Below, piece by piece: positions 3 to 61,882 of a stretch of 64,000 nucleotides of DNA. The DNA is taken from positions 233,105-297,104 of IMG/VR virus record IMGVR_UViG_3300025141_000016; one strand, written 5' to 3'. Under the pieces are notes generated by a model that was given only the letters and a program-made list of their open reading frames with translations, had not been told where the DNA came from and ran no database searches. Position 1 is the stretch's first letter. Each line of letters starts with the position of its first letter. Position numbers and translations under genes: made by a program.

Positions 3-2144
3 ATTCCGGGGCGTTCTGACACATTACTGGAACTGATTGAGGGGGCGGGGTTCCAAGGACGCGCAGCACAGCGTTACGCCGACCGATTCCGTGAAACCCT
101 CGCTCAACAAAGCCGAGAGGTTGCCGCCAGCGCAAGTCGAGTCGCTGCCCGCTACCTCGTCGCAGACTGCAATCTGCGGCTTCCCTCTCATTCATGGATT
201 GACCCCAAGGGGAAGGTTCATTTGGTTCCCCTTATGCACGATGTCTGGGCCGAGGAAAAGATACGATCTACGCCCTCGATGCTGCGTTCGTTTGTGAAAC
301 GCTACAGGGAATACTATCCCGATGAACTCTATGAGATCGACCATCCGTGGACCAGTTTTCTGGTTGACCAAGGTTGGGTGAGGGTGGCGAACTTTCTGAA
401 CTTTGAGGGGAGAGATCACCTTGTTTCCCCGCACGCTTGGGAGTCAGCCGCAGACCTCATCATCAACTGTGTGGTCAAGAAGCAGCTTGACCCCGAGACT
501 ACTGTCGTGACGGTCGCTGGATATGGGAAGCAGCGATACTCGGTGTCCCAGATCGTCAGGGAATGGGGTGGGCGCAAGGCCGAGGATCGGTTGTTTGGGG
601 CACTCATGGCCCGCACCGCTGCCCGACTTTGGTATCACGGGACTGAAAAGCGTTTTGAAGAGTTCAAGACCTTTGAGAGCCACACGTTTGGGTCTGACCC
701 CTCCGAAGTGCCTCTGTTCTTCTCGCCCTCCAAGTCCTTTGCAAAGATGCACGCCCAAGGACCGAAGGGGGTCATCTACACGGCGCGGCTGAAGTGGCGC
801 AAGGTGTTTGATAGCGCCAACTTGTATCGGGAATCTCGGTACTGGCCCCCCGAACGTGACGCTCTGACCCAAGAGGGGAAGGCCCTGTACGACGACCTCG
901 TAGGGGGCAAGGTGTTTCCCGGCATTGATGAAGACGATCTGCTTGACGGGTATCCGAGTCTTTGGTCGCAGGTGCTCCGTATGGATTACGATGTGATTGA
1001 AACGACGGAGTTCAAGCGGTGGCTCAAAAAGAACGGTTACGACGCGGCTTATGTCACGGGAGATGGTGAGCAGAACGTGTTTGTCTTCTCCCCGAGACAG
1101 GTCGAGGTTGTGGGCGTGCAAAGGGCCTCCGCATCCGTTTCTGCTTCCCGTGTCGCTGCTCGCCATCCCGTCGTGGACATTGACCCCAGCAAAGTAAAGT
1201 TCAAGATCCGATCCAGTAGCGATGCTGTGGCTGTGGAAATGCGGTATGGCGGTAAGCGCATTGGCGGCATGAACGCCCACAAGGTCCGTTATCCAGAAGA
1301 GAAGGACTGCCCTCGGGACGTTACCGCGTTGGCTGAACGCTTCCCCGAGTTGGTGACGGGAGAATGGAAGCGCAGCGATGGTGAGGTGTGGCGATACATC
1401 ACCGCGCTGGCCGTCTTCAAAGCGTTCATCACCGAGGAGGAGTTTCGGGGGTATGGGCTCGGCAAGAAGATGTATAAGGCACTGATGGGGGCTTGGTTCA
1501 AGAAGGTCGGACCATTTCTTTTCATGCCCTATAAGTGTGACGGGGGTTCGGGCACGTCACCAGACGCGATGCGGGTTTGGCACTCTTTAGCCAAGGAGTT
1601 TCCATCAAGTGGCGACGTGGTTGCGGTGATGAAGAATCCGCGTGTGGCTCGGGGGCAGTTACCCCAGTACCGAAAGAGGGCACACACCCCCGACTCCAGC
1701 GAGGAGGTCGAGAACTGGGTGGATGACTTTGGGCGGGAAAACAACTACACGCCTGGAACCTGTGACCTCAACCGTGGCGACTGCGACATGATGTCAAACG
1801 TCTTCGCGGACTGGTTTGAGGACCAGACTGGCGTGGGGCTTCAGATATGGGCCGGTCAGGGGTTCATCCCTCCTCTCGGGAAGGATGCCAATGACCTCTG
1901 GGTCATGCTTTCGGGGGACAAAGCCCACAAGAAAGGCGAGAAACCCCTCTCCCATGTGGTCGTCGTCTGGGGGGATTGGGTCATTGACCTTACAGGTCGT
2001 CAGTTCGGTTCCAAGTACAAGGCCCCTGTGTACTCTCTTTCGGAGTTCAAGAAGCGGTGGGCCACCGTTGGGAAGGCCCGTCGGGCTGACCGAGGGATCA
2101 ACAACCTCCGACGGATGATGCTCCAGAACTCCAGCGATTGGTAG
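3..2144 (+). CDS. Tag-B polyprotein, 5'-truncated: unknown domain + ART-like + GNAT + transglutaminase/papain-like domain
   Basis: Frame of ORF 222..2144 is open back to the window start and includes ASASRVAARYL (129-158). ART-like: WYHGT..FFSPS..GYDA..VFSPRQV. GNAT: EFRGYGLGKKMY. C-H-D triad: GDCDMMS..SHVVV..IDLTGRQF. Confidence 0.75.
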   Translation: MPGRSDTLLELIEGAGFQGRAAQRYADRFRETLAQQSREVAASASRVAARYLVADCNLRLPSHSWIDPKGKVHLVPLMHDVWAEEKIRSTPSMLRSFVKRYREYYPDELYEIDHPWTSFLVDQGWVRVANFLNFEGRDHLVSPHAWESAADLIINCVVKKQLDPETTVVTVAGYGKQRYSVSQIVREWGGRKAEDRLFGALMARTAARLWYHGTEKRFEEFKTFESHTFGSDPSEVPLFFSPSKSFAKMHAQGPKGVIYTARLKWRKVFDSANLYRESRYWPPERDALTQEGKALYDDLVGGKVFPGIDEDDLLDGYPSLWSQVLRMDYDVIETTEFKRWLKKNGYDAAYVTGDGEQNVFVFSPRQVEVVGVQRASASVSASRVAARHPVVDIDPSKVKFKIRSSSDAVAVEMRYGGKRIGGMNAHKVRYPEEKDCPRDVTALAERFPELVTGEWKRSDGEVWRYITALAVFKAFITEEEFRGYGLGKKMYKALMGAWFKKVGPFLFMPYKCDGGSGTSPDAMRVWHSLAKEFPSSGDVVAVMKNPRVARGQLPQYRKRAHTPDSSEEVENWVDDFGRENNYTPGTCDLNRGDCDMMSNVFADWFEDQTGVGLQIWAGQGFIPPLGKDANDLWVMLSGDKAHKKGEKPLSHVVVVWGDWVIDLTGRQFGSKYKAPVYSLSEFKKRWATVGKARRADRGINNLRRMMLQNSSDW

Positions 2145-4845: not shown

Positions 4846-5667
4846 ATGACCCCTTCAAGCCAACGTGTAGCTTCCCGGTGGGCGAAGTCCCAAGCCAACT
4901 GGACGCTGCCCTATCTGGAAAAACTCATCAAGGCAGCCGAGGGTGACCCCACAGGGTGGGGGGAGAGTAGTCCTGCCGCCCGCGTCCTGCGGCAGATGAT
5001 CAAGTCCTCCGGGTTCGGGAACCTTGACCCGTTCCCAGTAGGTGAACTGTGGGACTACTTGACCTCATACGATGTGGACTCCGACGAGATCGCGGTGTTG
5101 AAGAAAGTTCGACCCCCCCGAGCACGGAAAAGGAAGGTAGGTCCGACATTCTACGAAGCACTACGCGCCTTTGAGCAGGCAACGGGGAAACACACGACCA
5201 CATCCCGCATTGACTGGGACAACGACCACCACTTGGCCCCGGCATTGTTGGCGATCACCAAAGCCGTCTCCAAGTTGCCCAAGCGGGCTGCCCGCCTCTG
5301 GCAGTCGGAAGTCAAGGAGGTGATGCTGGTCGGGCGCAACAAGAGCACCGAGGATGCCTCTTGGCGGGCCGGTGGCGTGATGCGTTTAGTGCTCGGAAAG
5401 AGTGGTTTCCACTCTGTGTCCCAAAGCGTTCCCCCCTGGCGCTCCCACATTGTCCATGAACTCGGGCACGCACTGGAGGACAAGTTGAATCTGGTGGTGA
5501 CCGCTTGGTCCTCGGACCCCTACGGCCATGAACCATACATTTCGGCATACGCGGACACGAACGCCTCGGAGGACTTTGCCGAGACGTTTCAGGCTTTGGA
5601 GATGGAGCCGAGCCGCCTACGACGAGTAGCCCCTGCCAAGTATGAGGACATGAAGGCTCGCTTTTGA
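4846..5667 (+). CDS. Tag-B protein with zincin metallopeptidase domain
   Basis: HELGH followed by SAYADTNASEDFAE; N-terminal SSQRVASRW; start moved to ATG 4846. Confidence 0.75.
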   Translation: MTPSSQRVASRWAKSQANWTLPYLEKLIKAAEGDPTGWGESSPAARVLRQMIKSSGFGNLDPFPVGELWDYLTSYDVDSDEIAVLKKVRPPRARKRKVGPTFYEALRAFEQATGKHTTTSRIDWDNDHHLAPALLAITKAVSKLPKRAARLWQSEVKEVMLVGRNKSTEDASWRAGGVMRLVLGKSGFHSVSQSVPPWRSHIVHELGHALEDKLNLVVTAWSSDPYGHEPYISAYADTNASEDFAETFQALEMEPSRLRRVAPAKYEDMKARF

Positions 5668-12074: not shown

Positions 12075-13097
12075 GTGAATCACCCGGACCCCAAACGAGT
12101 TGCTATCGCTGTGTCTCCGCAGCATCAGGCGGCTCGGGTAGCGGCTCGCTACGCCTCCTCCCCTCTGATAAAGGAGTTGGAGGAAGACTACCATTCCCTC
12201 TGGCATGACAAGCATGAAAGGGAGGACGGAAAGCCTCGGCTGTGCCCACTGAAAGCTGGGGTGCCCGATTGTGAGAAGATGACCCTCAAAGAGTTCGTTG
12301 CCAAGTGGAAGAGGCACGGGCTGAAGGCGGTAAAGGTCCAACGGCTTCCTACCACCTACTCCTACTATGACTGTGGGAGCCACGCCACGCTGCGGACGGA
12401 ACAGATCCATGGCAGCCGACTTTACCCCCAAGGCGACATCACGGTTGACTTGAACACCCCCATTCCTTGGAGCAAGGCGAAGAAAGGCGACTGGGTTCAA
12501 TGGCCATGGCACCACGGAGTGGTGATTGATCCCAAGCGCAAGATTGTGGAGAGTTGTTGGGGGGTAGACGGATGGGTGTTTCAACACCCCGTAGACCTTT
12601 CTACTTATGGGGCGAAGCCTACGGTTCATTCCGTGCATCCAAAAGAGAAGACCAAGACCGCCAGTTCTGATGGTCAGTGTATCGTCGGAGGCCAGTGCTT
12701 CCGCTACGCTGTCATGTGGGATGGCAAAGGCCCAGGATCATCCCCTGACGACATTGTTGTTCACGGGAACGTGCATGGCTTGGTCGGTCCTCACGCCTGG
12801 GTCGAGCGGAAGGACGGTCGCGTATTTGACTGGCAGACGGTTGAGGGGATCTGGGAGACGCTTGGCCGTCAACCTGACCCCAGCTACACCAAGCGCGGCT
12901 GGCCGAAGCGTGAGTTCTACGCGGAGTTCAAGCCGCGCAAGATGAAGCGGTACACCGCCGAAGACGCGCTGATCAACGGGATACGGAACCGGCACTACGG
13001 TCCCTGGGACGCGGATGAGGAGTACCGTCCTCCAATCCGATCAGCATCGCGGGTTGCCGCTCGCTACTTGATGGCTTCTCGGCGGCAACGCCGGTAG
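12075..13097 (+). CDS. Tag-B polyprotein: NlpC/P60-papain-like domain + transglutaminase-like domain
   Basis: YDC..HHGVV..ESCWG..HP..YG domain; KTAS linker; QCFRYA..HAWVE..FDWQ domain; tag B at both ends. Start GTG 12075 after AGGAG. Confidence 0.7.
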   Translation: MNHPDPKRVAIAVSPQHQAARVAARYASSPLIKELEEDYHSLWHDKHEREDGKPRLCPLKAGVPDCEKMTLKEFVAKWKRHGLKAVKVQRLPTTYSYYDCGSHATLRTEQIHGSRLYPQGDITVDLNTPIPWSKAKKGDWVQWPWHHGVVIDPKRKIVESCWGVDGWVFQHPVDLSTYGAKPTVHSVHPKEKTKTASSDGQCIVGGQCFRYAVMWDGKGPGSSPDDIVVHGNVHGLVGPHAWVERKDGRVFDWQTVEGIWETLGRQPDPSYTKRGWPKREFYAEFKPRKMKRYTAEDALINGIRNRHYGPWDADEEYRPPIRSASRVAARYLMASRRQRR

Positions 13098-15580: not shown

Positions 15581-17017
15581 ATGAATCGCTACGCTGCCGC
15601 TTTGGTTCGTTTGGCGGTATCCCTGCCGTCAGGGAGCCGTGACCGCCGAGTGATCCTTGCTTTGATCAAAGAGGCGGGAGCCCGTGAGGATTTTCTGGCT
15701 CGCTACGAGTTCCTTGGGGGGCTCACCGGCAAGTCGGGTGATCGGGTCAAGAGTGATCTGAAGCAGGGCGACTACGAGCCGTATGTGAAGGCACTTGCCG
15801 CTAATGGCTGGGACGAGGGCACCGCACAGCGCCCCGGAGAGGCCCTTACGTTCGTTGACCCCACGGCCAACATGGGGCTGTGGACGGCTTTGGTGAGGGG
15901 CGGAAACTCGGCCTTGGGCCGTGCCGTGGACGAGGTGGCCAAGTGGCAACCTGCCCTGTCAGGAATCTCTGGTGAGGATGTTGCCCAGGTACTCTCACAC
16001 GGGGGTCAACACTGGCCTGGGATGCGCTTCGACTCTCGCGTGAAGAATGAGAAAGGTGGCTTTGGTGATTATGTCGAGCGCGTGAGCGGCGAGGAGCCCT
16101 ACGCGACTGGAGACAACATCTTCCGGTCTGTCGGGAAGGAACTGAAGTCCAAGAAGTTCAACCTCGCTTTCATTATCAAGAGGTTGATGGGGATTGCCCG
16201 CAACAAGACGAAGGATTGGGTCCGCTCGGTGGATGCCGGGAAGTGGGAGGGACCATTCCCCGAAACCGAGGAAGGCCAGCAGATTGTCCCGAGGGGATAC
16301 ACACCCCCGGACCCTGCTGACATGCTCACCAAGGAGTTGTATCTGAAAGCCATCGATCCCGTGATGAAGCGGGTGTTGGCTGATGCCCCTGCACAGGCTC
16401 GGATTTGGGAGGCTCTGTTGGCTTCCGTCCAGGCCAACAAGAACTTTCTTGGGGTATCCGCGAGAGGAAAGGGGGAGGGTGATGTGACCCTGGAGGGCAC
16501 GAAGTTCCGTCCCTTCATGGAGAAGTATTTTGAGGGGCAGACGGATGAAGACGACAACCCCATCCGAATCCCCACCACCCAGAAGATCGCCGCAAACTTC
16601 CAGAAACTCCTGAAGAAGATGAGGGCTGCGTTGGCGGGTCTTTCCGACGCAGAGTTGGCCAAGGGGCTCCCGAGACAAGACCGTGAGATCCTGAAAGACC
16701 GTGACATAGCGAGTGTCTACTGGTCGGAGGTCCATCGTCGCCGTCGGGCTTTGCTCATTCGTATGGCTTCCACGTTCCCCGTGGGGTCAGAACACCGCAA
16801 GGTGTTGCTCCGGCAGGCATCGGATGTGGGGGCGAAGGACGTGTTGACCGAGAAATCGCTCATCAAGTATTTGAAGGCGACGGGGGATACTGTCTCGGCT
16901 TCAACGCTGGCCTACGGCTTTGGGGGCAACCCCCAGCAACACACGAAGTTCCTTCAGCGGCTTGTGGCCAAGGGTGTGCTTGATAAGGACGGCAAAGAGT
17001 ACAGCCTCGCCCTCTGA
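15581..17017 (+). CDS. Tag-A polyprotein: ECF-sigma-like domain + winged-helix domain
   Basis: Two tag-A copies; GEDVAQ and LMGIARNKTKDWVR resemble ECF region 2; C-terminal wHTH LQRLVAKGVL..YSL. Confidence 0.5.
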   Translation: MNRYAAALVRLAVSLPSGSRDRRVILALIKEAGAREDFLARYEFLGGLTGKSGDRVKSDLKQGDYEPYVKALAANGWDEGTAQRPGEALTFVDPTANMGLWTALVRGGNSALGRAVDEVAKWQPALSGISGEDVAQVLSHGGQHWPGMRFDSRVKNEKGGFGDYVERVSGEEPYATGDNIFRSVGKELKSKKFNLAFIIKRLMGIARNKTKDWVRSVDAGKWEGPFPETEEGQQIVPRGYTPPDPADMLTKELYLKAIDPVMKRVLADAPAQARIWEALLASVQANKNFLGVSARGKGEGDVTLEGTKFRPFMEKYFEGQTDEDDNPIRIPTTQKIAANFQKLLKKMRAALAGLSDAELAKGLPRQDREILKDRDIASVYWSEVHRRRRALLIRMASTFPVGSEHRKVLLRQASDVGAKDVLTEKSLIKYLKATGDTVSASTLAYGFGGNPQQHTKFLQRLVAKGVLDKDGKEYSLAL

Positions 17018-33818: not shown

Positions 33819-35057
33819 ATGGCTACCCCTACTGACCGACAACTCCTCATCCGTGTGGCCTCCACTCTCCCTGTGGGGTCAGAAGCACGTCGCGTGATCC
33901 TGGCTGGGTGCGAGAAGCTGAAGGTTCCCGCGATGCGCGAGAACTGCGAGAAGTCCAAAGAGGACGGTGTTCAACCCGGTAAGGGCAAGTCGAAGTCAAA
34001 GTCGAAGGGTGACGACAAGATGCCAGCCGAGTTGCTGGAGAAGTTCAAGGCCAAGAAGAAGGCCAAGACCGCTCGGCTGATGAAGCGGCAAGAGAAGATC
34101 CTTCGCCAGTACCTCGACTCCGCATCGAGTCCAGCGATGGACTACGACGGCCTACCCCCGCAGGTTCAGAGTGCTTTGAGGCGCGTCAAGAACCAAGAAA
34201 CCCTGCACAGTGACGTGGAACGCTGGCTCGGGGACAACGCCCAACGCTCGATGTGGGCTTCCAACCGACCAGCTTTGATTCGCCTCGCTTCCAGTCTTCC
34301 TGCTGGGTCAGATGAGCGTAGGGTCATCCTCGCAAGGATCCAGAAAGAGGCCCGAGGTGGATGGGATGAGGTCATTTCCGGTGACCTCATGCGTGCTCGC
34401 TTCGGTGGTCAGAGGGTGATGATCGAGGAGATGCCGGGGAAACCCGTCAAGCGCAAGGTCCGTCGCATCACATTTTCGACGGAGTGGGTGATGCGTGGTG
34501 GGTGGTTCCGCCCCGACGGCCCTTTCCTGATGAGCAACATCTGGAATGATGCCGGTATCACCAAGAACATGACCTATGACCGAGCAGTGGCGGCGATGAG
34601 AGGGGCTATCGAGGAGGTGGGCACCAAGGCACTGAAAGAGGCAGCCAAACTCTCCAAGAAGTATCCGGGCAACTACATGACCCCTGCCGAGATGCAGGCG
34701 CAGTTGGATAAGGTCAAGTGGCCCAAAAACTTCCTCGGGAACGAGGAAGTTGTGTCGTTCTTGGAGGTCGAGCCGCAAGACTATTCCCCGATTTCTTTCA
34801 AGGGAAAGGACTTCGCGGGAACATCGAGATGGGATGAGTTCACGTTCTACGACGAGGCAGACAAGGACGACTACATGGCCCAGATGGAAGGGATGCGGGC
34901 GTTCTACAAGTCTACGTCGAAGGGTGCCGCCCGTAAGCTGTTCAAGCTGCTGAAGGCTGACCCCGACGTGGTTCGGAACATGGACAACGGGGACTTCCTG
35001 TTGTGGCTCGGCAAGAACAAGGTCAGCCACCGATACGTCCCCACCGTCTGGCGCTGA
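33819..35057 (+). CDS. Tag-A polyprotein (two tags, unknown cargo domains)
   Basis: LIRVASTLPVGSEARRVILAG and LIRLASSLPAGSDERRVILAR; KTAR and KEAR linkers. Confidence 0.75.
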   Translation: MATPTDRQLLIRVASTLPVGSEARRVILAGCEKLKVPAMRENCEKSKEDGVQPGKGKSKSKSKGDDKMPAELLEKFKAKKKAKTARLMKRQEKILRQYLDSASSPAMDYDGLPPQVQSALRRVKNQETLHSDVERWLGDNAQRSMWASNRPALIRLASSLPAGSDERRVILARIQKEARGGWDEVISGDLMRARFGGQRVMIEEMPGKPVKRKVRRITFSTEWVMRGGWFRPDGPFLMSNIWNDAGITKNMTYDRAVAAMRGAIEEVGTKALKEAAKLSKKYPGNYMTPAEMQAQLDKVKWPKNFLGNEEVVSFLEVEPQDYSPISFKGKDFAGTSRWDEFTFYDEADKDDYMAQMEGMRAFYKSTSKGAARKLFKLLKADPDVVRNMDNGDFLLWLGKNKVSHRYVPTVWR

Positions 35058-41819: not shown

Positions 41820-42244
41820 TGACCTACCGTTATTCGTGAAGCGAGGGAGAGGAGCGGTCGCTCCCCCATGAACATCCCCATCCTCCGGGCTTTGACGAGG
41901 AAGACATTGTGGTTGACGAAGAACTGAAAAAGGAAGCCTCCCAAGATCGCCGGATCCTCATCCGTCTCGCCTCCACTCTCCCTGCGGGAGATGGGATGCG
42001 CCGAGCCATCCTGGCTGGGCTCCGACGGAGAGCCGCCAAGGAACCTTGGAAGCACTGGGGGAAGACGCAAAAGGAGATGCTTGGGATAGCCAAGGCCGAG
42101 ATGAAGCGGCTCAATGTCAGGAGCCCAGATGATCTCCGCAAGGCGCGAAAGAAGCATAAGCCCAGTCTCCCGTCCGATGGGTCCAGCGGTCAATATGACG
42201 CTTGGACCGAAACGCTCGCACAGGTCTTGGAGATGGAGGAATGA
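41819..42244 (+). pseudogene. Tag-A gene interrupted by an in-frame TGA at codon 7 (or starting at GTG 41909)
   Basis: TGATG-coupled ATG 41819 is in frame with ORF 41909..42244; single TGA at 41837-41839. Confidence 0.5.
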
Positions 42245-46679: not shown

Positions 46680-47000
46680 ATGACTGAACCTACTCGCCGG
46701 ATGCTGATCCGATTTGCGTCCACCCTTCCTGTGGGATCAGACGAACGTCGGACCATCCTCGCTGGACTGGACAAGCAGGGTTCCGTGGAGTCCTTTGAGA
46801 AGGAACTCGCCATACAGTTACGTTTGCATACGGGCTTGGGTCCAAAGGATCAGATGGGCCTGAAGGGTCGCACCGTGTGGCTTGCCGATGGAAAGGGTGA
46901 GGTACTGATCTACGATACGACTGCCCGTGGGACGGTGCTCAACTACAAGGGCAAGGAATACAAGTCGGTAAGGGACTTGATGAAGTCCCTTTCTCGGTAG
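46680..47000 (+). CDS. Small tag-A protein
   Basis: LIRFASTLPVGSDERRTILAGL, then KQGS. Confidence 0.75.
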   Translation: MTEPTRRMLIRFASTLPVGSDERRTILAGLDKQGSVESFEKELAIQLRLHTGLGPKDQMGLKGRTVWLADGKGEVLIYDTTARGTVLNYKGKEYKSVRDLMKSLSR

Positions 47001-50100: not shown

Positions 50101-52606
50101 GGGCTTCGCAGCGGACACCCTGGAGATCGACGTAAGTGCGGACACCAGTGGTCGGCTTGTCCTGACCATGAAACAGGCACCAGTTGATACCACAGGTGCC
50201 ACGCTGGAAGTCGTGAACAACGCGACTCCCGCCGATGACTTCATGGTTCTGGCGGGTTTCGATGCTGATGCAGTAGGAAACGACCAGACGATTCTGGTGA
50301 GTGGTCCTATCGCTACGGAGATCACCAACCTCACGGCAACCACGACGGGCGTGACCCCATACGACCGGATCTGGATCAGGAACCGTATCTGTCCGGGCAA
50401 CGCCCAGACGGCGACTCACCTGACCGATTCCGAGTTCTGTTTGAGTCAGTGTCAGTTGAAGATGCTGGGCGGAACCGGTGCTGGATTCGCGGGCCTGACG
50501 GCCAACGAGCAGGGCTACGCTGGGATCACCGGCACCATGCAGGCACCCACCCTCTTTGGTGAGGTTGGTCTGGCTGGTGGGCAGGACGCATCTGATGATG
50601 TGGTGGTCGAGTTGTTCGCGGACGGTGGAACGACCGATCAGAACAACATCTTCAAGATGACCTTTGAGGGTGAGCCCATCACCATCGAGTTCACTGACGG
50701 CGCTGGAGCGGCGATTGCTGCTGGCGGTTCGGCTGATGTTCCTCTGGGACCGCTCACTGACGCGAACAGTATCCTCGGCCAGATCGACGCTGCCATGACG
50801 ACTGCGGGAGTCACTGGCACCGTTGCCCAGGAAGGGTGCGGTATCCGTTTCCGTGGTGGGAGCACGGCTGCTGCCGCTTCCATCGTGATCGGAGATGCGA
50901 ACGCCAACGACGTTCTCGGATTCACCGAGGGCGATGTGGCCTACCGGACTGTTGTTGAGACTGAAGTGGTCGTATCCGCCATGATGGCGGCTTTCGACAA
51001 CTGGACGAACGTCGGTGGTATCGCCAAGACGGTCAACGACGAGGCCAACGCCAAGTACCTGTTCATCGAGAGCATGGGTACGGCAGGGCTCGGGACGCTT
51101 TCCTCTGTGGCCTTTGACGACGCGGCTACGGATTCCGCACTCCGTCCGGGTGTTGGGCTCGGTGTGGCTGTGGGAGACGGTAACGCGGGAGAGGCGGCCA
51201 TCGACGGCTTCTTCGTCACTTCGACGGATACCGTCAATGGTTCGGGAACGGCGAACACCTCCATTCTCAACGCTGGCACGGGCCAGGATGGAAATGTGGG
51301 TGAAACCTACCGTGATCTCGTCACTGGGTTCACAGTCTCCGTCCTTCCACGGGCTGGTGGCGGCTCCTACCCCACTGGTGGAACCATCACCTTCACGGTC
51401 AGGGAGAATGTGACCACCGACAGCAACCTGCCGGTGAACACGATTCCTGGCCTGGAACTGACGGTCAGCAACACGTCCGGGGTTGTCGCCGGAGATACGG
51501 CGGTTGTCTCTACCTACGAAAAGGGTGGAAATCAGCCGAGCGTTGGGGATGTGTACTACGTCTCCTACGACTACGCGAAGCAGGATTTCAGTGCTGCGCT
51601 GTTCACCAAGTTGTCCTCCATTCAGGCGGCCTACGGGGCGAACAGTCCGAATAACCCTGTCTCGTTGGCATCGTACTTTGCGGTCCTCAACGGTGCTGTT
51701 CTCCTCTCGGTCAAGCAGGTCCAGAAGGACACTGACTCGACGGGAGATGGGGCTTACGACACAGCCAGTGAAACCGCCTTCATCGCGGCCATTGACGACG
51801 TGGAAGGAACGCTTCCGGGCGGTCTGTACCCCGACATGTTGGTGCCCTTGAAGGGAGATAGCCTGACTCTGTTCCAGTATGTCGCCATGCACTGTGACAT
51901 TCAGTCGAGCATCCGCTACCGCGCAGAGCGTACCGCTATCTGCGGATACGGTGCCGGTACGCAGCCTCGGGACGCGGGAACCATCGCGCAGGCGGTGGGT
52001 CGTTCTCGGTTGCGCCTCATGTACCCGGACATCGCCACGTTGAGCCTTTCTCGGGCTGACGGGACGACCGACTCCTACCTTGTGGATGGCACCTACCTCG
52101 CCGCTGCATGGTCTGGAAATCGGGCTTCCCCGAACATCGACGTTGCTACTCCGTGGACGCGGGGACGCATCTTCGGGTTCGATGAACTCGCTCGGACGCT
52201 CGATGCGGTTCAGCAGAATCAGGTCGCTGTGCGCGGTGTGACGATCTTTGGCCAGCGCCAGAGCATCATCGAGTGCCGTCATGGTCTGACCACTGACATG
52301 ACCAACGTGTTGACGAAGACCCCGACCGTGGTGACCATCGCGGATGAGGTTCAGCGTCAGGCGCGGGCGACTCTCGACAAGTTCATTGGAACGAAGTTCC
52401 TGCCGAGTGTCACGGGTCAGATCGAGGGGCAGTTGGCCAACACCTTGAAGAAGCTGGTCCAGGCATCCATCATCAACGCCTTCACGGGAGTTTCTGCGGC
52501 AGTGTCAGCAGATGACCCCACGGTGGCGGAAGTGGAAGCCTACTACCAGCCCATCTTCCCGCTGCTCTACATCGTCGTGACCTTCAATCTGCGAAGCACA
52601 CTGTAG
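47117..52606 (+). CDS. Contractile tail sheath protein with large insertions
   Basis: N-terminal YAPPGVY; C-terminal sheath domain ending YQPIFPLLYIVVTF; 1829 aa. Confidence 0.88.
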   Translation: MAFPGSVYAPPGVYTQTLYEDPIQGLAASVRLPLIIGTGSEELFQTALELIRGSSSSVDQRVVQEDETGRAVVSVSDTGVVTLGNFDGDLTRLQVKNYPIVSGQGTGTTATDAASVNVTLNGAPIVVLAIDGATGILTLSVTPESTDEVKVTYYFNRTDTLITDTLSDQISPDAPEIFGALGENYVVTADVNDTLEFTVDSEDTVSVTITASPVTGWTAAQVATFINAEATGTTLIASTTVDNFGNTVLHLTADRDIVVEDGTCNTTLGLTSAYDTARNKVFYTFQSPIVDGSDGGVTTTDPADVTVKVGGTQVIPTAVDGQTGAITLPFAPETGTTVTCQYYFNSWQDTFDYLAHRGITDITLCGLTPDRSDYIDGADFILKDDKILWGTSTLTAAGTNTAGSTYFDDTQISTSLVDTRQYLAACAAVVDTSVTPPVENRKDFTLPLQPTTGNGRDTPLGASTYAEVANGRLDLPTDRPDLVYAYWGYTVEDALNRGRVEVTKVDSATSQITLRESVPVGASVYATFYYNTLVDGDYTLTSVTAGASGVGTYSIMDENSVSLLTPQFGAKSALLATVTVEFPSGSERTPDCRFEPPFTTTSFTGAVEEDVTIEFAVQDATLAKYAVASAGPYYPVTGASDNLLITLDGTDRTIDLNNPARTGATPAFANPKGFRASVVGDEIVYDAAGFATGTITVGGTPVATTATLLIDGVTLTEQGATGWVNDATVDLTATAIATAINTFVTTVSAVAIGSVVHITAATAGTAGNAIATSSPSGDPAFTFSAATLAGGTVLGTALAITAATNAIDMELDGGLGSAKLVQAQVNAGAGQKAEHIVAAINRAAHGEFGAALGGGAATIILAADASDVDDYYVDWEIKVTAGLAAGEKNTITAYNGTTKVATVTAWAGGAPVITDTYYVYDPDTCPSMTGATRFLNAVTIGTGGFDDIILSYVGAISGVTAITTAAVPIAAATYNTVADLVTAAQTAMDAAITAAGFAADTLEIDVSADTSGRLVLTMKQAPVDTTGATLEVVNNATPADDFMVLAGFDADAVGNDQTILVSGPIATEITNLTATTTGVTPYDRIWIRNRICPGNAQTATHLTDSEFCLSQCQLKMLGGTGAGFAGLTANEQGYAGITGTMQAPTLFGEVGLAGGQDASDDVVVELFADGGTTDQNNIFKMTFEGEPITIEFTDGAGAAIAAGGSADVPLGPLTDANSILGQIDAAMTTAGVTGTVAQEGCGIRFRGGSTAAAASIVIGDANANDVLGFTEGDVAYRTVVETEVVVSAMMAAFDNWTNVGGIAKTVNDEANAKYLFIESMGTAGLGTLSSVAFDDAATDSALRPGVGLGVAVGDGNAGEAAIDGFFVTSTDTVNGSGTANTSILNAGTGQDGNVGETYRDLVTGFTVSVLPRAGGGSYPTGGTITFTVRENVTTDSNLPVNTIPGLELTVSNTSGVVAGDTAVVSTYEKGGNQPSVGDVYYVSYDYAKQDFSAALFTKLSSIQAAYGANSPNNPVSLASYFAVLNGAVLLSVKQVQKDTDSTGDGAYDTASETAFIAAIDDVEGTLPGGLYPDMLVPLKGDSLTLFQYVAMHCDIQSSIRYRAERTAICGYGAGTQPRDAGTIAQAVGRSRLRLMYPDIATLSLSRADGTTDSYLVDGTYLAAAWSGNRASPNIDVATPWTRGRIFGFDELARTLDAVQQNQVAVRGVTIFGQRQSIIECRHGLTTDMTNVLTKTPTVVTIADEVQRQARATLDKFIGTKFLPSVTGQIEGQLANTLKKLVQASIINAFTGVSAAVSADDPTVAEVEAYYQPIFPLLYIVVTFNLRSTL

Positions 52607-52625
52607 GGTCAACCCAGCAGGCAAA

Positions 52626-52666
52626 CCGAGTGCCCCTTCCCGTAAGTGTCGGGAAGGGGCTCTCGG
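52626..52666 (+). terminator. GC-rich stem-loop after the sheath gene
   Basis: CCGAG-T-GCCCCTTCCCG / CGGGAAGGGGC-T-CTCGG; no U-tract. Confidence 0.55.
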
Positions 52667-52678
52667 TAGGTCGCCTAT
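52664..52678 (+). promoter_or_regulatory. Class I motif
   Basis: CGGTAG-gtcgc-CTAT, before 52720. Confidence 0.75.
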
Positions 52679-52719: not shown

Positions 52720-54150
52720 ATGCCTACCTTCACCTCTGATGATCGCAAGATTCTGGTCCGGTACGCCTCGACGCTGCCCTCCGGGTCGCCGGAGCGGAAG
52801 GCTGTTTTGGCGGGTCTTTCCCTGACTGGTTCCGGTTCCGGTGCTGCAAACGCGAAGTATCTGGACAGCCTGCCCTCTGGCACGAAGGCCAAGATTCTGA
52901 AGAACGTGGCCAAGCATTATGGTGTCTCCGTCTCCGAGATCGAGGACGAACTGACAGATCGGGATGCAGAAGCCCTGTATGAGTACATCGCAAACGACAA
53001 TGCCTTGCGGATGCAGGTTTACCGCGACTTCAAGCAGCAGCGGTTGGCTGCAAGCAAGAACGCTGCCGGATACGCCCGTAAGTCCATGCGTGGGGGAGAC
53101 TACGGAGGGGCTGGGAGCAGCAAGCAGTTGGTGAAGGACATGATTGCCAACATGCGACGGGTGAAGACCAACGCTGAACGAAGCCATGCCGTTGAGCAGG
53201 TGCAGCACGCGGAAGCTGCGAAGTCCATCACCTCCCAACAGGCCAAAGAGGTCATGGGAGCCATTGGTAAGACCGCATCGGCCCGTACCGCCGAGGACTG
53301 GATGGAAGACGCGGTGAAGCGCCCTGGTCGCCTTCACAAGTTCTTCGGTATCCCCGAGGACGAGACGATCCCCATGTCGAAGATCGACGGTGAGATCGCC
53401 AAGTTGAAGAAGAAAGACGACCGCACGAAGGACGAGGAGTCCCTGCTCGATGCCCTCAACCTGGGCAAGACCTTCAAGGAAATGAAGAAGTCGGCTGCGG
53501 GAGAGGAACACTACATCGGGGACGAGGAAGCGGGGGTGTACTGGAGCGTCGATGAAACCCCTCGCGGATGGTTCGTCCAGGCTTGGGTGGATGGTGGTCA
53601 CTTCACACATGACTTCCCGAAGGATGGTCCTTACCCCACCGAAGGGGAAGCCATGGAAGCTGGATGGTCACAAGGGCTTGAATGGGTGGTGACCAACGAT
53701 GTGAGCCTTGCGGGCGAACCCAAGACCTTCCCCGCCTGGGCTCGCAGGAACAGATGGCAGCCTCGCACAGCCTCCTCCGATGATCGCATCGCTCTCATCC
53801 GCTACGCCTCTACCCTTCCTGTGGGGTCAGATGAGCGCAAAGCCATCCTGTCGGGGTTGAAGACTGCTGCCCTTGATTCCGTGTCTCTCGGTGAGATGAT
53901 GGTGTCGGCGGCAGCCCAGGCTCGGCTGTTCTATCGCCTTGACATGAAGCGGTTTGTGGGTGTGTACGAGGAAGTGGGTCAGAATCTTATCCGAATCGGG
54001 CATACCTCTGACCCCGATGACCGTGCGTTCCTTGTCAGCGAGGTCGATAAGGGGCTGGCCGATTTGAAGAAGCACAACATCACCGCTATGTCGGAGGCGT
54101 TGGAGCACATGACCCGTGCCTACGCACTCGTTTCCAAAGCGTATCGCTGA
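52720..54150 (+). CDS. Tag-A polyprotein with about five small modules
   Basis: Two tag-A copies; RLAA, KTAS-ARTA, KSAA, RTAS, KTAA linkers. Confidence 0.75.
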   Translation: MPTFTSDDRKILVRYASTLPSGSPERKAVLAGLSLTGSGSGAANAKYLDSLPSGTKAKILKNVAKHYGVSVSEIEDELTDRDAEALYEYIANDNALRMQVYRDFKQQRLAASKNAAGYARKSMRGGDYGGAGSSKQLVKDMIANMRRVKTNAERSHAVEQVQHAEAAKSITSQQAKEVMGAIGKTASARTAEDWMEDAVKRPGRLHKFFGIPEDETIPMSKIDGEIAKLKKKDDRTKDEESLLDALNLGKTFKEMKKSAAGEEHYIGDEEAGVYWSVDETPRGWFVQAWVDGGHFTHDFPKDGPYPTEGEAMEAGWSQGLEWVVTNDVSLAGEPKTFPAWARRNRWQPRTASSDDRIALIRYASTLPVGSDERKAILSGLKTAALDSVSLGEMMVSAAAQARLFYRLDMKRFVGVYEEVGQNLIRIGHTSDPDDRAFLVSEVDKGLADLKKHNITAMSEALEHMTRAYALVSKAYR

Positions 54151-55403
54151 TGGCTCGACGTACTGCCAAGGCTGATGTGACCCCGGTTCGACAGCGGACC
54201 CAGTACACCTGCATGAGCACCTCCCTGATGATGTGCCTCCAGGCCCTTGGGTACGACGTTGACGAGGATGAGGTCAACAAGGTCATGGGCGCACGTCCCA
54301 TGAAGGGTGCAGCGTGGGAGCAGGCTCTTGCCGCTGCCCAGCACTTCGGAGTCCGAGGAACACTCGTGACCCCTTCGACTGTGCGGCAGTTGAAGGAATG
54401 GACCGACGCGGGCAAGCCCGTGATGATCGCCTGGAATCCCGAGGGTCGAGAGTGGTCACACGCCAGCGTCGTCTTCGACGTGACCCCGTGCAAGGAACAT
54501 GGGTTCGACGTTCATGTCGCTGACCCCAACATCCCTGACCCCGACGAGACAGTCCGGGTCATGCCCAAGTCCGAGTTCTACAAGAAGTGGTACGAGAAGT
54601 GGCCGAACTACTTGGTTCGCCGTCCCGCTCTCATGCTGGACCGGGAGATCACTCCTGATGGTCGTCAGGTGATGGCCTTCAAGAAAGCATCCTCTCGTGG
54701 CTGGGAGAAAACCATCGCTTCTTGGAGCAAGGAGTACAAGACCCCAGAGGGGAAGGTTTTAGGGACCGTGGTTATCGACCGGGGCAAGGTCAACTGGAGG
54801 CCGAACCAGTTGATTGAGGGTTTCGTTCGTCCGCAGGTCATCAGTCGTTCCCGAAGTGGGGAAGAAATCCCCAGTAACGAGAAACTGACCTCTGTGGCAG
54901 ATGCCTGGGTGCGGAAGAACCATGGGAGACAAGTCATGGCTTCCGGTTCCGCTGACCCCAGCCGGGTGGCGGCCAGATATGCCTCGCGCTGTGCCAGTGG
55001 GGATAAAGCCCTCTGGGCGGGTCGGCGCAAGCCCACTTCCGGGGAAGTGGAATGGGCGAAGAATGCCAAGTGGCAGGATTGGGAGCCGCACCCACTCCCC
55101 GATGACCTCACCAAGTTTTTCAAGCGCACCCCAGATACGATTGAGGTGGGTCTTTCCGAGATCACCCCAATCCGGGCTCGGGAGAAAGGCATCGCTAACG
55201 CCAACCGATTCATGTGGTTGGCGTACTGGGGGAAGATGCCCCGGCGAAAGCCCATTTCGTTGAGAGAAAACGATGACGGCACCTACACCATCCTTGATGG
55301 GAACTCGACCTATGCCAACGCCAAGATGAGTGGGTGGAGACACATGTGGGGTCGAGTTGAAGAGTCCCCCTCTACAACGCGGCTATCGCGGAGGATCCCA
55401 TGA
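54150..55403 (+). CDS. Tag-B polyprotein: C39-like peptidase + unknown + ParB/Srx-like domain
   Basis: RQRTQYTC..SHASVV..VADP; KPI..YTILDGNSTY..GW; ADPSRVAARY. Confidence 0.72.
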   Translation: MARRTAKADVTPVRQRTQYTCMSTSLMMCLQALGYDVDEDEVNKVMGARPMKGAAWEQALAAAQHFGVRGTLVTPSTVRQLKEWTDAGKPVMIAWNPEGREWSHASVVFDVTPCKEHGFDVHVADPNIPDPDETVRVMPKSEFYKKWYEKWPNYLVRRPALMLDREITPDGRQVMAFKKASSRGWEKTIASWSKEYKTPEGKVLGTVVIDRGKVNWRPNQLIEGFVRPQVISRSRSGEEIPSNEKLTSVADAWVRKNHGRQVMASGSADPSRVAARYASRCASGDKALWAGRRKPTSGEVEWAKNAKWQDWEPHPLPDDLTKFFKRTPDTIEVGLSEITPIRAREKGIANANRFMWLAYWGKMPRRKPISLRENDDGTYTILDGNSTYANAKMSGWRHMWGRVEESPSTTRLSRRIP

Positions 55404-58264: not shown

Positions 58265-59671
58265 GTGCCAACCAATGTAGTCAAGACACCAGCCGATGAG
58301 AAGAAGTGGGAGAAGGCCAAGGCCCGTGCGAAAGAGCAGGGGAAGGCCGAGAACTATGCCTACATCATGGGCATCTACAAGCAGATGAACCCCGAGAGGT
58401 TCAAGTCAGCCCAGCGGGTCACCGCCCGGTTTCGCGATGAGGACTATGTAGACCTGCTCCAGAGGAAAATCTCCCTAAAGGAGTTCCTCAAAAAGCACCC
58501 CAAGATCAAAGCAGTTGACACCCAACGACTCGATGCCCTGCCGGAAAGCGGATTGTCCAGAGGGTACGACTACGATTGCTTTGTCCATGCAGAACTGCGA
58601 GCCGTCCAGTTGAGCGAAGCCAAATCCTACCGAGAGGTAGACTGGGAACCCATCGGACTCGACGGTGCCGGGGCCAACCCACCCAGAGGAGCCGGGATCC
58701 CGTGGAGTGAGGCCAAGAAAGGGGACTGGGTTCGGTGGCCCGGACTCGGAGGCCATCACGGCGTGGTCATTGACCCCAACCGGAAGATTGTAGAGAGTTG
58801 TTGGGGCTACAAAGGCACCGTGTTCCAGCACCCGGTTGACTACCATCCCTACGGAGGCGGTGGTGAGGTTTTCCCCGTGCGCCCCAAAGTATCAGCCCAG
58901 CGGGTCGCCGCCAGATACGCAGCACAGCTTCCTTTGATGGACCCCCTCTACAACCTGCGGGAAGCCGCCAAGGAACTGCTCTTGCTGGAGGACCATCTGG
59001 GTCATGCCCAGAAGCACTGTCCTGACTGCATCCGTAAACATCTGCTCACCACGGAGGCACTGCTTGAAGAAGCAGTGCGCCTCGACACAGAAGGGGAGAT
59101 GTTGGGGTTGCTCTCACCGCTTCCGGCACAGGTACGGGAACTGTGGACAGCCTATCAAGATGGTCGCCCGGAGCATGAGATCGGGCAAGCCGCCCGTGTT
59201 TTGCGTAAGGGACTCGTAGAGGCTTCCGCCGATGTTCGTGTGGCTGCCCAGGCTGCAAAGCAGGGGAAGTATGCCTACATCATGGGGATCTACAAGGGCA
59301 TGAACCCCAAGGCTTCTGCTTCTAAGGTTGCTGTACGGTACTTGACGGCTCGGATGTCTTCAAAGATACGAAGAGCCATAGCGAAGTGGTACAAGAAAGA
59401 GAAATACACTTCGGAGCTTTATCCTGGATCCTACAAGCACAAGTGGAACAAGGAAAACCACCCGGATGTCTTGGAGAAGCGATTCAACAAGATGTATCGG
59501 GGTTTCGGAGGGGACCAGAGAGAACACTTCGCAACCAAGGTGTTGGACTACTACGAACACCCAAGCTGGGCTCGGGGGTACGAAATCTTGGCGCAAGCGT
59601 GGGAAGATACGGATCGCTACTTCAACGAACCGGTGGAAGATCCAGACCCTTACGACGAGGAGGACTACTAA
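58265..59671 (+). CDS. Tag-B polyprotein including an NlpC/P60-papain-like domain
   Basis: Three tag-B copies, duplicated YAYIMGIYKxMNP, domain paralogous to 12075..13097. Confidence 0.75.
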   Translation: MPTNVVKTPADEKKWEKAKARAKEQGKAENYAYIMGIYKQMNPERFKSAQRVTARFRDEDYVDLLQRKISLKEFLKKHPKIKAVDTQRLDALPESGLSRGYDYDCFVHAELRAVQLSEAKSYREVDWEPIGLDGAGANPPRGAGIPWSEAKKGDWVRWPGLGGHHGVVIDPNRKIVESCWGYKGTVFQHPVDYHPYGGGGEVFPVRPKVSAQRVAARYAAQLPLMDPLYNLREAAKELLLLEDHLGHAQKHCPDCIRKHLLTTEALLEEAVRLDTEGEMLGLLSPLPAQVRELWTAYQDGRPEHEIGQAARVLRKGLVEASADVRVAAQAAKQGKYAYIMGIYKGMNPKASASKVAVRYLTARMSSKIRRAIAKWYKKEKYTSELYPGSYKHKWNKENHPDVLEKRFNKMYRGFGGDQREHFATKVLDYYEHPSWARGYEILAQAWEDTDRYFNEPVEDPDPYDEEDY

Positions 59672-60033
59672 TGGCTGCAACCCCCTATGCCTACAACGCC
59701 TATGTCGTATCGGTTTACGATGGTGACACCATCACCGTCATTCTCGATATGGGAATGGGGGTGCAGAAGAAAGCCAAATGTCGAATGTACGGCATCGACA
59801 CCCCGGAAATCCGTGGCAAGACGGTTCGAGAAAAGACCGCAGCCAAAGTCGCCAGGGATCGCTTGCGAGAGCTCGTCAACGAGAAGACGGTACTCATCCA
59901 GTCCCTTACCAAGCCCGACAAGTACGGAAGGCTGCTGGTAAAAGTGTGGATCGATGACACCTACATCAACGACCTTCTAATCGAAGAAGGGTTGGCGAGA
60001 GCCTACGATGGTGGAAAGAAGAGTCCTTGGTAG
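59671..60033 (+). CDS. Thermonuclease (SNase-like)
   Basis: VYDGDTI, RMYGIDTPE, DKYGRLL, EGLA; TAATG-coupled start. Confidence 0.9.
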   Translation: MAATPYAYNAYVVSVYDGDTITVILDMGMGVQKKAKCRMYGIDTPEIRGKTVREKTAAKVARDRLRELVNEKTVLIQSLTKPDKYGRLLVKVWIDDTYINDLLIEEGLARAYDGGKKSPW

Positions 60034-60326
60034 ACCCTAATGGATACCTGGAACTCGAATCCAAAAGCGCGGATGTGCAACCAGTGCAACCCACAATCCT
60101 TCGGGAATAGTCGCGCCGCGACCAAGTGCGATTAAGACGGACAAGTAAGTAAACGCCTCATCTTCATCGAGCCTGAGGTTCCGTTTTTCCATCCATGTTT
60201 GAGCGGTAGAATCCATGAGAAGGCAAGCCCCTCCCATAAATCTAACACAAAACCCCCCTGTTTGCGAAACAGTTTCCTGTTCGCACAAACTAAGGGGCAA
60301 AGTTTCCCCCAAAAGGGGCAAAAGTT

Positions 60327-61872: not shown

Positions 61873-61882
61873 ATTGACACCC

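Follow-up and report, generated by a model that had tools for sequence, protein, structure and literature searches.

A Lys/Arg-x-Ala-small motif and shared peptide tags in mosaic, putative cargo proteins of a huge uncultured phage: candidate sites for a head-maturation protease

ORF 52720-54150 (P0001; 476 aa) of IMG/VR record IMGVR_UViG_3300025141_000016 raises the question of why a short motif, [KR]-x-A-[SAG], recurs between the small modules of which the encoded protein is composed. The ORF lies within a stretch of 64,000 nucleotides (positions 233,105 to 297,104 of the record; hereafter the window), which belongs to a 297-kb record (G000), estimated at 67% complete, of a huge tailed phage whose capsid gene is related to those of phage G and Tunturi_5. 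An earlier note, based on the sequence alone, proposed that the motif is a maturation-protease site separating about five cargo modules, that a specificity for Ala would differ from the cleavage after Glu of the T4 and phiKZ proteases, and that the protease gene is absent from the window. We therefore asked whether the motif exceeds expectation, where it occurs, and which function would best account for its distribution.

The observation made in the note was confirmed, and the signal is stronger than could be seen from the window. All tetrapeptides named for P0001 are present (RLAA at residue 108, KNAA at 113, KTAS at 184 followed by ARTAE, KSAA at 257, RTAS at 349 and KTAA at 381), and two further RYAS copies lie inside the tag described below. 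The motif occurs 8 times in P0001, where about 2.4 copies are expected (2.3 in whole-protein shuffles, p 0.0014; 2.5 in 12-residue local shuffles, p 0.001), while the reversed pattern, [SAG]-A-x-[KR], occurs once. Wider counts were 79 against 53 +/- 6.5 in the window and 331 against 227 +/- 14 in the genome, and, after masking of the tags, the genome still showed 274 against 218 +/- 15; the genome-wide counts are approximate, since the greedy ORF set used for them missed at least one real tagged gene (13140-13589). The copies listed in the note for other ORFs are also present, although KTAR and KEAR of ORF 33819-35057 and RTAK of ORF 54150-55403 (P0002) do not fit the fourth position of the motif. 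The sites separate modules: of 139 BLAST breakpoints between P0001 and its mosaic homologues, 63% fall within 8 residues of a site, against 29 +/- 12% for random site sets (p 0.005). Whole-protein MAFFT alignments of the mosaic proteins misplaced module A, and P0001 was therefore folded as two halves. The confidence of the resulting AF2 models is modest (mean pLDDT 69.6 and 52.8), but the linkers have low confidence, while module A reaches pLDDT 83-91. A Foldseek search of the first half against PDB and BFVD returned nothing below E 0.1. The features of the window are collected in the table.

Features of the window connected with the motif and the M1 and M2 tags (positions are those of the window)
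Position	Strand	Feature	Supporting observations
52720..54150	+	ORF P0001 (476 aa), mosaic putative cargo protein: M1 tag - module A - B - C - D - M1 tag - module E	Translation; homologues share single modules in other orders
52729..52818	+	M1 tag copy a (res 4-33, FTSDDRKILVRYASTLPSGSPERKAVLAGL), modelled as helix-loop-helix	HMM E 6e-16; AF2 helices 6-17 and 24-34
52840..53040	+	Module A (res 41-107), the most widespread module; in homologues preceded by KTA[GA][GS]S and followed by RL(x)AS(x)KTA	AF2 pLDDT 83-91
53041..53067	+	Linker RLAAS-KNAA (res 108-116), two motif copies	Cluster of homology breakpoints at 100-125; low pLDDT 115-132
53068..53268	+	Module B (res 117-183), basic (pI 10)	
53269..53295	+	Linker KTAS-ARTAE (res 184-192); the orthologue P0005 has a whole extra module inserted exactly here, flanked by ASARTAE and ASRTAE	Low pLDDT 187-203
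53293..53490	+	Module C (res 192-257), matches Pfam PF25632 (Fusellovirus VP2 family)	Pfam E 1.1e-7, 32.6 bits against cut-off 27; phrog_15706
53488..53499	+	Linker motif KSAA (res 257-260)	Breakpoints at 250-268; low pLDDT 255-277
53500..53754	+	Module D (res 261-345), acidic, found only in close relatives	
53764..53775	+	Motif RTAS (res 349-352) at the start of the second tag	
53770..53859	+	M1 tag copy b (res 351-380)	HMM E 5e-16
53860..53871	+	Motif KTAA (res 381-384) directly after the tag	Low pLDDT 379-384
53872..54147	+	Module E (res 385-476), the C-terminal module in several homologues	
54150..55403	+	ORF P0002 (417 aa), translationally coupled to P0001	TGATG overlap
54174..54593	+	C39-like papain-fold cysteine peptidase domain of P0002, with Cys21, His104 and Asp125-Pro	PF13529 E 2.3e-8, 35.2 bits against cut-off 24; 79% identical in IMG/VR contigs and 47% in LR745208; nearest solved structure PeiR endoisopeptidase, E 8e-4
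54660..54692	+	End of the peptidase domain, DGRQVMAF-KKAS; GRQVMA recurs at 54924-54944	
54951..54995	+	M2 tag (ADPSRVAARYASRCA) inside P0002	
13152..13241	+	M1 tag of ORF 13140-13589, followed by HKTAS	
15596..15667	+	M1 tag, N-terminal copy in ORF 15581-17017, followed by KEAG	
16736..16816	+	M1 tag, internal copy in ORF 15581-17017, ending in RQAS	
33822..33911	+	M1 tag, N-terminal copy in ORF 33819-35057	
34257..34340	+	M1 tag, internal copy in ORF 33819-35057	
41936..42022	+	M1 tag in ORF 41909-42244, preceded by KEAS and followed by RRAA	
46680..46769	+	M1 tag at the N-terminus of ORF 46680-47000	
126..170	+	M2 tag between domains of the ART-PolyVal protein (ORF ..2144)	
1137..1181	+	M2 tag after the ART domain of the same protein	
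4852..4896	+	M2 tag (PSSQRVASRWAKSQA) in ORF 4744-5667	
13041..13079	+	M2 tag at the C-terminus of ORF 11886-13097	
58406..58447	+	M2 tag in ORF 58265-59671	

Much of the signal, which the note had not recognized, belongs to two conserved peptides: M1, a tag of ~30 residues modelled as helix-loop-helix, and M2, a ~13-residue tag of the form SASRVAxRY (SASRVAARY). A six-frame scan, which corrects the tag counts for ORFs missed in the annotation, found 23 copies of M1 in the genome, 9 of them in the window, in at least 16 proteins of the phage; M2 has 17-25 copies. In public data, a profile search with M1 found 1,506 cluster representatives at E <= 1e-3; 123 of 228 copies start within the first 12 residues, and single copies are placed almost always at residues ~6-39 of proteins of 75-250 aa, although M1 also occurs internally and at extreme C-termini, which a pure N-terminal propeptide model does not require. 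No existing family for M1 was found in Pfam or the ESM Atlas, no cultured phage in the phage collection searched carries it, and a helix-hairpin-helix (DNA-binding) reading was rejected, since no Pfam HhH hit was obtained at E <= 1. Codons at the invariant residues of the tag vary freely, so selection acts on the peptide.

The motif flanks the tag. Among 198 M1 copies from proteins no more than 50% identical, K is found at +2 in 110 and A at +4 in 78, and the strict motif lies within 8 residues downstream in 31%, against a background of 2.9%; upstream of internal copies the values are 36% and 4%. The association is incomplete: in G000 only about 9 of 21 M1 copies are followed by the strict motif, the first tag of P0001 is followed by SLTGSGSG instead, and RLAS inside M1 and RVAA/RYAS inside M2 fit the motif themselves, so that part of the excess is tag sequence rather than separate sites. 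An independent replicate is provided by the sister phage LR745208 (capsid protein 83% identical), in which a search with a positive control found no M1. This phage has its own tag, TLRSKLIRLAHxNPxLRPxLLPLL, at 11 places, and of 9 copies read, 8 are followed within 0-2 residues by KEAA, KEAG, KQAG, KTAG, RQAG or RTAA, and the ninth by KEAM.

The note had suggested looking for the prohead protease elsewhere in the genome and for the same motif in capsid or scaffold propeptides. The statement that the protease gene is not in the window holds for the head-maturation protease, which is encoded at genome positions 19549-21045 (phrog_18299, E 1.3e-12; 40% identity to Tunturi_5 gp331, annotated as head maturation protease), in the order portal - cargo - protease - scaffold - capsid, with the scaffold gene at G000:21055-22431. 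This assignment is supported only by the PHROG match and the GenBank annotations of homologues, since the Pfam models of the S77 and S78 prohead proteases (PF03420 and PF04586) did not match the genome and no PDB sequence match was obtained. Scaffold-like genes next to the protease in G000, three metagenomic relatives, LR745208 and Tunturi_5 (gp332) carry 8, 12, 8, 10, 11 and 9 motifs, against 2.8, 1.7, 1.0, 1.5, 2.9 and 2.3 expected (an excess put at 4- to 8-fold); four scaffolds pooled give 38 forward and 8 reversed copies, with 9.2 in local shuffles, and a conserved trio of sites lies just before the conserved scaffold C-terminus. The putative scaffold of phage G, gp21, has no motif. In the protease family (120 orthologues) the motif averages 4.9 per protein against 1.5 expected (586 against 195 in total), a value reached by none of 400 decoy patterns of equal frequency, and sites are positionally conserved at reference positions 26, 390 and 441, and about 293. 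Tunturi_5 gp328, annotated as DNA ejection protein, has 14 copies against 3.3 expected, whereas terminase, portal, capsid, sheath and eight DNA enzymes together have 11 against 16. The idea that M1 copies the targeting tail of the protease was dropped: hhalign aligned M1 with the conserved C-terminal helix of the protease family in the expected register, but the weak resemblance is not significant (probability 0.5%, E 0.13).

The interpretation offered in the note is thus partly supported: the motif is a selected, directional element at module and tag borders, its distribution matches that of a head-maturation protease site, and a specificity for Ala would indeed differ from T4 and phiKZ. With moderate confidence, we consider P0001 to be a virion cargo polyprotein. 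In this view, (i) M1, and in the larger enzyme-bearing proteins M2, would bring each cargo unit into the assembling procapsid, (ii) the head-maturation protease would cut at the [KR]-x-A-[SAG] sites, most likely next to the Ala, removing the tags and separating the modules, (iii) the same protease would degrade the scaffold and trim itself, and (iv) the freed modules would stay with the DNA and be delivered into the host. The analysis itself establishes the motif, the tags with their conservation and selection at the protein level, the mosaic architecture, the presence of the protease gene, and the restriction of the motif to scaffold, protease, ejection-type and tagged proteins; the location in the virion, targeting by the tags, proteolysis itself, the scissile bond and the identity of the protease are inferred from sequence statistics and analogy, without direct evidence of cleavage, and papers on phage G and Tunturi contained no cleavage-site data.

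Of the alternatives, the least unlikely is that tags and linkers are conserved but not cut, serving as docking or hinge elements (e.g., helix caps, or binding sites for a scaffold, portal or chaperone partner) of proteins that work as intact beads on a string. The occurrence of M1 at N-termini, internally and at C-termini, the share of motifs lying inside the tags, and in-frame fusions of tagged genes (such as G000:197240-198244) would suit this reading, and N4 vRNAP-type and plasmid polyvalent proteins are delivered uncut (PMC5512222), while 42 head proteins of SPN3US are not cleaved (PMC10052503). However, a docking role does not predict the excess in scaffolds, the positionally conserved copies at the domain borders of the protease, or the retention of the same four-residue pattern after a diverged tag in LR745208, and modules that end a protein lack the linker. 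It is less likely still that the sites are cut by the C39-like peptidase of P0002, a rival candidate overlooked in the note, which would process itself and neighbouring cargo proteins in the capsid or after injection, as proposed for peptidase domains of polyvalent proteins. Its Cys/His/Asp set is intact, it is translationally coupled to P0001, the IMG/VR contigs in which it is conserved bear M1, and autoprocessing peptidases are a theme of polyvalent proteins (PMC5512222). All three orthologues end the domain with DG[RK]QV[MV]A[SF], after which the sequences diverge, and in P0002 GRQVMA recurs once more, exactly at the next module border and nowhere else in the genome; a hydrophobic P2 with a small P1 would suit a papain-like enzyme. 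The second GRQVMAS is, however, not conserved in the orthologue of genome G001. This reading also does not explain the concentration of the motif in the scaffold and in the head protease family, nor the enrichment in Tunturi_5, in which no homologue of this peptidase was found, and the similarity to the cell-wall endoisopeptidase PeiR suggests that the domain may be a lysin or an effector. A predicted complex of this domain (P0002 1-172) with P0001 338-392 gave no verdict and is not evidence either way.

Two further explanations appear very unlikely. The linkers could be recombination joints at the DNA level, at which module cassettes are exchanged without a function in the protein, and extensive shuffling does occur exactly at the linkers (e.g., the extra module of P0005). 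Yet synonymous codons at invariant tag residues are as varied as genome usage, the two M1 copies of P0001 share only ~70% of a 23-nt core, the six linker motifs use different codons, and the pattern holds, with variable residues, across proteins no more than 50% identical. An artefact of Ala/Lys-rich, high-GC coding sequence might be suspected, because the pattern is loose (expected about once per 410 residues) and the window is Ala-rich with 59% GC, but this was tested and rejected: the forward motif exceeds local shuffles and the reversed pattern, which control for composition, 3- to 4-fold in the relevant proteins, no decoy pattern matches it in the protease family, and control proteins show no excess.

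If the proposed mechanism holds, it predicts a cleavage specificity ([KR]-x-Ala-small) for the head protease of a large, mostly uncultured clade of huge phages (1,191 homologues of the protease were found), gives a sequence rule for recognizing which of their many unknown proteins are packaged and injected (M1 alone marks more than 1,500 protein clusters with no Pfam family), and offers a natural tag-and-release system that could be used to load foreign proteins into large capsids. It would also explain how these phages shuffle tiny protein modules so freely, and it is open to test, since a cultured relative, Tunturi_5 (PP885688; on an acidobacterial host), shows the same motif pattern in its scaffold, protease and ejection protein. 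A bolder reading, not excluded but held only tentatively, is that phages of this clade use a portable code of address tag plus cut site, in which a helix-loop-helix tag loads dozens of interchangeable mini-effector modules into the capsid, singly or as polyproteins, and one Ala-specific head protease releases them; sister phages would carry mutually distinct tags but keep the same cut site, so that modules could be swapped between genomes by exchanging cassettes at the linkers, and the capsid interior would be a programmable delivery compartment on a scale not described for any phage.

Parts of the proposed system have precedents. In T4, the capsid targeting sequence (CTS) is a short N-terminal peptide shared by several head-internal, injected proteins (IPI-III and Alt), including an ADP-ribosyltransferase; a protease motif follows it directly, and prohead protease gp21, which removes it, also degrades the scaffold (PMC9024508; PMC10052503). 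The T4 tag has ~10-20 residues and the cut follows [LI]-x-Glu, whereas M1 is longer, can be internal or C-terminal, and accompanies a different motif and mosaic, multi-module cargo; there is no sequence similarity. In the giant phages phiKZ, SPN3US and 201phi2-1, many head and ejection proteins are processed by gp175/gp245: N-terminal propeptides are short (20-24 residues) or long and cut at several sites, the protease (gp245 of SPN3US) removes its own C-terminal propeptide, and the motif ([S/A/G]-x-Glu or AXE) was defined by mass spectrometry (PMC10052503), while the site proposed here is at Ala and only inferred. That lineage is unrelated, the capsid protein of the present phage being 41% identical to phage G gp27 and 50% to that of Tunturi_5. 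Cutting at Ala is not without precedent in the superfamily to which the phage protease would belong if its annotation holds, since herpesvirus assemblins cut after Ala with a small P1' residue (YLQA-T, VQA-S), and an M-site close to the scaffold C-terminus frees the scaffold from the capsid protein (PMC4498786), which recalls the trio of motifs before the scaffold C-terminus; P3 is hydrophobic in herpesviruses and K/R here. The N-terminal signal of P1 DarB is sufficient to direct a protein into the capsid (PMC9024508). The C-terminal targeting tail of the HK97 protease acts likewise, but these are signals of single proteins, not one tag family shared by many.

In double-glycine leader systems, many paralogous precursors share a conserved helical leader ending in two small residues (GG/GA/GS), with a C39-like peptidase encoded nearby, but the leaders have hydrophobic residues at -4 and -7 and the peptidase is fused to an ABC exporter; here K/R occupies -4, P0002 has no ABC domain, and the cargo consists of folded modules rather than short peptides. 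A ParB-like C-terminus of P0002, guessed from an ILDGN string, was not supported by Pfam or PHROGs, nor by BLAST against the ParB-like end of G000:190585. The polyvalent proteins of phages and conjugative elements are multi-domain, heavily shuffled and delivered with the DNA, and processing by a built-in peptidase was predicted for them (Iyer et al., 2017; PMC5512222), though that paper describes no shared address tag and does not mention linkers, C39 or papain. No zincin-like MPTase turned up among the proteins scanned, in a scan not aimed at it. P0001 itself has only a VP2-like module and modules without recognised enzyme domains, whereas ART-PolyVal domains (E 9.5e-12) are present in two M2-tagged proteins, and head-module proteins of relatives carry InPase, Topoisom_I and 2H-ligase domains.

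The window is the last 64 kb of a 297,104-bp IMG/VR virus record (G000; estimated 67% complete, GC content about 0.59) of a huge tailed phage. The head module is placed at the other end of the record and contains genes encoding the large terminase, the portal, a head-maturation protease, an acidic repeat scaffold and a 294-residue major capsid protein. The capsid protein shares 83% identity with that of the uncultured 485-kb phage LR745208, 50% with that of the cultured acidobacterial jumbo phage Tunturi_5, and 41% with gp27 of phage G. Within the window, the gene for the 476-aa protein P0001 follows a tail sheath gene and is translationally coupled to the next two ORFs. The coordinates of the features are collected in the table below.

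Features of the window, of the remaining part of record G000 and of phage LR745208.
Location	Feature
Window 13140-13589	149-residue M1-tagged ORF
Window 13336-13866	Longer out-of-frame ORF overlapping the preceding one
Window 40074-41819	581-residue mosaic protein
Window 42202-43386	394-residue protein with a Dps/ferritin-like domain, among the tagged genes
Window 47117-52606	Tail sheath protein, 1,829 residues
Window 52625-52667	Inverted repeat between the sheath gene and P0001
Window 52720-54150	P0001, mosaic protein, 476 aa
Window 54150-55403	P0002, protein beginning with a C39-like peptidase domain
Window 60000-64000	Region of lowered GC content and strand switch
G000:4734-5834	M1-tagged protein encoded next to the portal gene
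G000:19549-21045	Head-maturation protease
G000:23342-24226	Capsid protein
G000:197240-198244	In-frame fusion of two tandem M1-tagged genes (outside the window)
LR745208 390421-403293	Locus (L024) with the capsid protein

All of the tetrapeptides named for P0001 in the earlier note (RLAA, KNAA, KTAS followed by ARTA, KSAA, RTAS and KTAA) are present, and the observation of a recurrent [KR]-x-A-[SAG] motif between small modules was thus confirmed and could be extended. The motif occurs 8 times in P0001, while 2.3 copies are expected from whole-protein shuffles and 2.5 from local 12-residue shuffles (p about 0.001), and the reversed pattern occurs once. In the window, 79 copies were found against 53 expected, and in the genome 331 against 227. 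The sites do separate modules: 52 database homologues share single pieces of P0001 in other orders, and of 139 homology breakpoints 63% lie within 8 residues of a site, against 29% for random site sets. The closest full-length relative lacks module A and carries a whole extra module inserted exactly at the KTAS-ARTAE joint, flanked by the same peptide on both sides. Module A occurs in about 33 homologues, in which it is preceded by KTA[GA][GS]S and followed by RL(x)AS(x)KTA; when it ends a protein, the linker is missing. A homologue of module A (protein P0053) is labeled as originating from a Planctomycetaceae metagenome-assembled genome, on a 258-kb contig; either a phage contig was binned with its host or this is a hint to the host group. 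AF2 models of the two halves of P0001, which are only moderately confident, place low-confidence stretches at the joints, while module A reaches pLDDT 83-91.

Two conserved peptides, designated M1 and M2, account for much of the signal. M1 is a ~30-residue peptide, modeled as a helix-loop-helix, with the consensus (K)TASDRSALIRLASTLPVGSxERRAILAGL(xKTA). It occurs twice in P0001, 9 times in the window and 23 times in the genome, mostly at the very N-terminus, but also internally and at C-termini. A profile search of 1.84 billion representatives returned 1,506 proteins at E <= 1e-3, and single copies sit almost always at residues ~6-39 of proteins of 75-250 residues. No Pfam family and no cultured phage in the phage collection searched contains M1. 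Codons at its invariant residues vary as freely as genome usage, so the peptide is under selection, not the DNA. One of the M1-tagged ORFs of the window, composed of the tag, HKTAS and a module shared with protein P0016, is overlapped by a longer out-of-frame ORF, so that a longest-ORF gene caller picks the wrong one. Another M1-tagged protein, encoded next to the portal gene, has an Arg-Ser dipeptide run at the N-terminus, three repeats of GLKTAST and a duplicated 20-residue tail, TRTRTAKYNTKLRATD.

M2 is a ~13-residue peptide, [PA]SASRVA[AS]RY[AL], located at N-termini and between domains of larger proteins. Two of these carry ART-PolyVal domains, and P0002 also has an M2 tag. M2-like N-termini (MxxxPxRVAxKY) head the polyvalent proteins encoded between portal and protease in related phages. 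After masking of both tags, the motif is still in excess (274 against 218).

The motif belongs to the border between tag and cargo. Among 198 M1 copies from proteins no more than 50% identical, K is found at +2 after the final Leu in 110 and A at +4 in 78. The strict motif lies within 8 residues downstream in 31%, against a background of 2.9%, and upstream of internal copies in 36% against 4%. The clearest test is the sister phage LR745208, in which, with G000 as the positive control, no M1 was found. This phage has its own tag, TLRSKLIRLAHxNPxLRPxLLPLL, at 11 places. Of the nine copies that were read, eight are followed within two residues by KEAA, KEAG, KQAG, KTAG, RQAG or RTAA, and the ninth by KEAM. 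The tag has diverged, while the four-residue pattern behind it has not.

The motif is concentrated in the proteins usually cut by a head-maturation protease. It is in excess in the scaffold, i.e., the product of the gene following the protease, in six phages.

Observed and expected numbers of [KR]-x-A-[SAG] in the scaffold-like product of the gene following the protease.
Phage	Observed	Expected
G000	8	2.8
Metagenomic relative 1	12	1.7
Metagenomic relative 2	8	1.0
Metagenomic relative 3	10	1.5
LR745208	11	2.9
Tunturi_5 gp332	9	2.3

Pooled over four scaffolds, 38 forward and 8 reversed copies were found, with 9.2 after local shuffling. Three sites sit just before the conserved scaffold C-terminus, which is the arrangement of the herpesvirus M-site (PMC4498786). 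The protease family comprises 1,191 homologues, of which the 120 aligned average 4.9 copies per protein against 1.5 expected, and none of 400 equally frequent decoy patterns reached this value. Within these 120 proteins, copies are conserved near the N-terminus (99 of 120), at position 390 (104 of 120) and just before the conserved C-terminal helix (102 of 120). Tunturi_5 gp328, annotated as a "DNA ejection protein," contains 14 copies against 3.3 expected. In contrast, terminase, portal, capsid protein, sheath and eight DNA enzymes together contain 11 against 16. The N-terminus of the capsid protein reads GR(A/N/Q)KLAAS in G000, LR745208, Tunturi_5 and three metagenomic relatives, which may be a conserved site that removes about 27 residues; phage G gp27 has GRVALAQ at this place.

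We conclude that the tags are most likely address signals for the loading of cargo into the procapsid, and that [KR]-x-A-[SAG] is probably the site at which the head-maturation protease of G000 removes the tags and separates the modules. This conclusion rests on sequence statistics and analogy; the location of the proteins in the virion, the targeting, the cut itself, the scissile bond and the identity of the enzyme are all inferred. Such a mechanism follows the logic of the T4 capsid targeting sequence with gp21 and of the phiKZ/SPN3US propeptides; in SPN3US, N-terminal propeptides of 20-24 residues and the protease's own C-terminal propeptide are removed at AXE (PMC10052503). The inferred specificity would be for Ala next to a small residue, as in herpesvirus assemblin (PMC4498786). 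Capsid-targeting propeptides combined with a prohead-protease site are thus already known, and the system predicted here would be a variant of them. The proposal of the earlier note that the motif is a maturation-protease site is partly supported, since the pattern is what such a site would give, while cleavage remains inferred. The note missed both the tags and the neighboring peptidase.

This peptidase offers an alternative, as P0002 begins with a C39-like cysteine peptidase domain, followed by a middle module, an M2 tag and a C-terminal module of unknown kind. The domain is conserved in relatives, being a stand-alone 207-residue gene in LR745208 and heading a 647-residue protein in two IMG/VR contigs. 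The peptide that ends the domain, GRQVMA, recurs once more, at the next module border of the same protein and nowhere else in the genome. However, cleavage by this enzyme does not explain the signal in the scaffold and in the protease, and no homologue of the peptidase was found in Tunturi_5, in which the motif is also enriched. The nearest solved relative of the domain is a cell-wall isopeptidase, and a complex prediction gave no verdict in either direction. It also remains possible that the motif is an uncut docking or hinge element, since M1 does occur at C-termini and some fused tagged genes exist. In one such in-frame fusion of two tandem genes, the internal copy still reads MPKT before the tag, like the start of its neighbors. 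The view that the linkers are recombination joints acting at the DNA level was rejected on the codon data, and a compositional artefact was rejected by the direction, local-shuffle and decoy controls.

The surroundings of P0001 have further features. In the tail sheath protein, sheath homology covers only the C-terminal ~350 residues (phrog_2839) and the N-terminal PGVY start, and some 1,400 residues of Ala/Thr/Gly-rich insert lie between them. The 113-nt gap between the stop codon of this gene and the start of P0001 contains an inverted repeat with 18-nt arms (94% complementary, 7-nt loop), which may be a transcript-end or processing hairpin, although no T-run follows it. The 581-residue mosaic protein has a Cys-rich CGGNCSCGGNC linker and the modules phrog_6004 and phrog_13953, which it shares, in another order, with database protein P0014, also carrying modules A and B of P0001. 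The Dps/ferritin-like domain (PF00210, E 2.8e-6; phrog_3636 "DNA binding protein") may mark another DNA-associated virion component. At the end of the record, the GC content falls from about 0.59 to 0.52 and the coding strand switches to minus.
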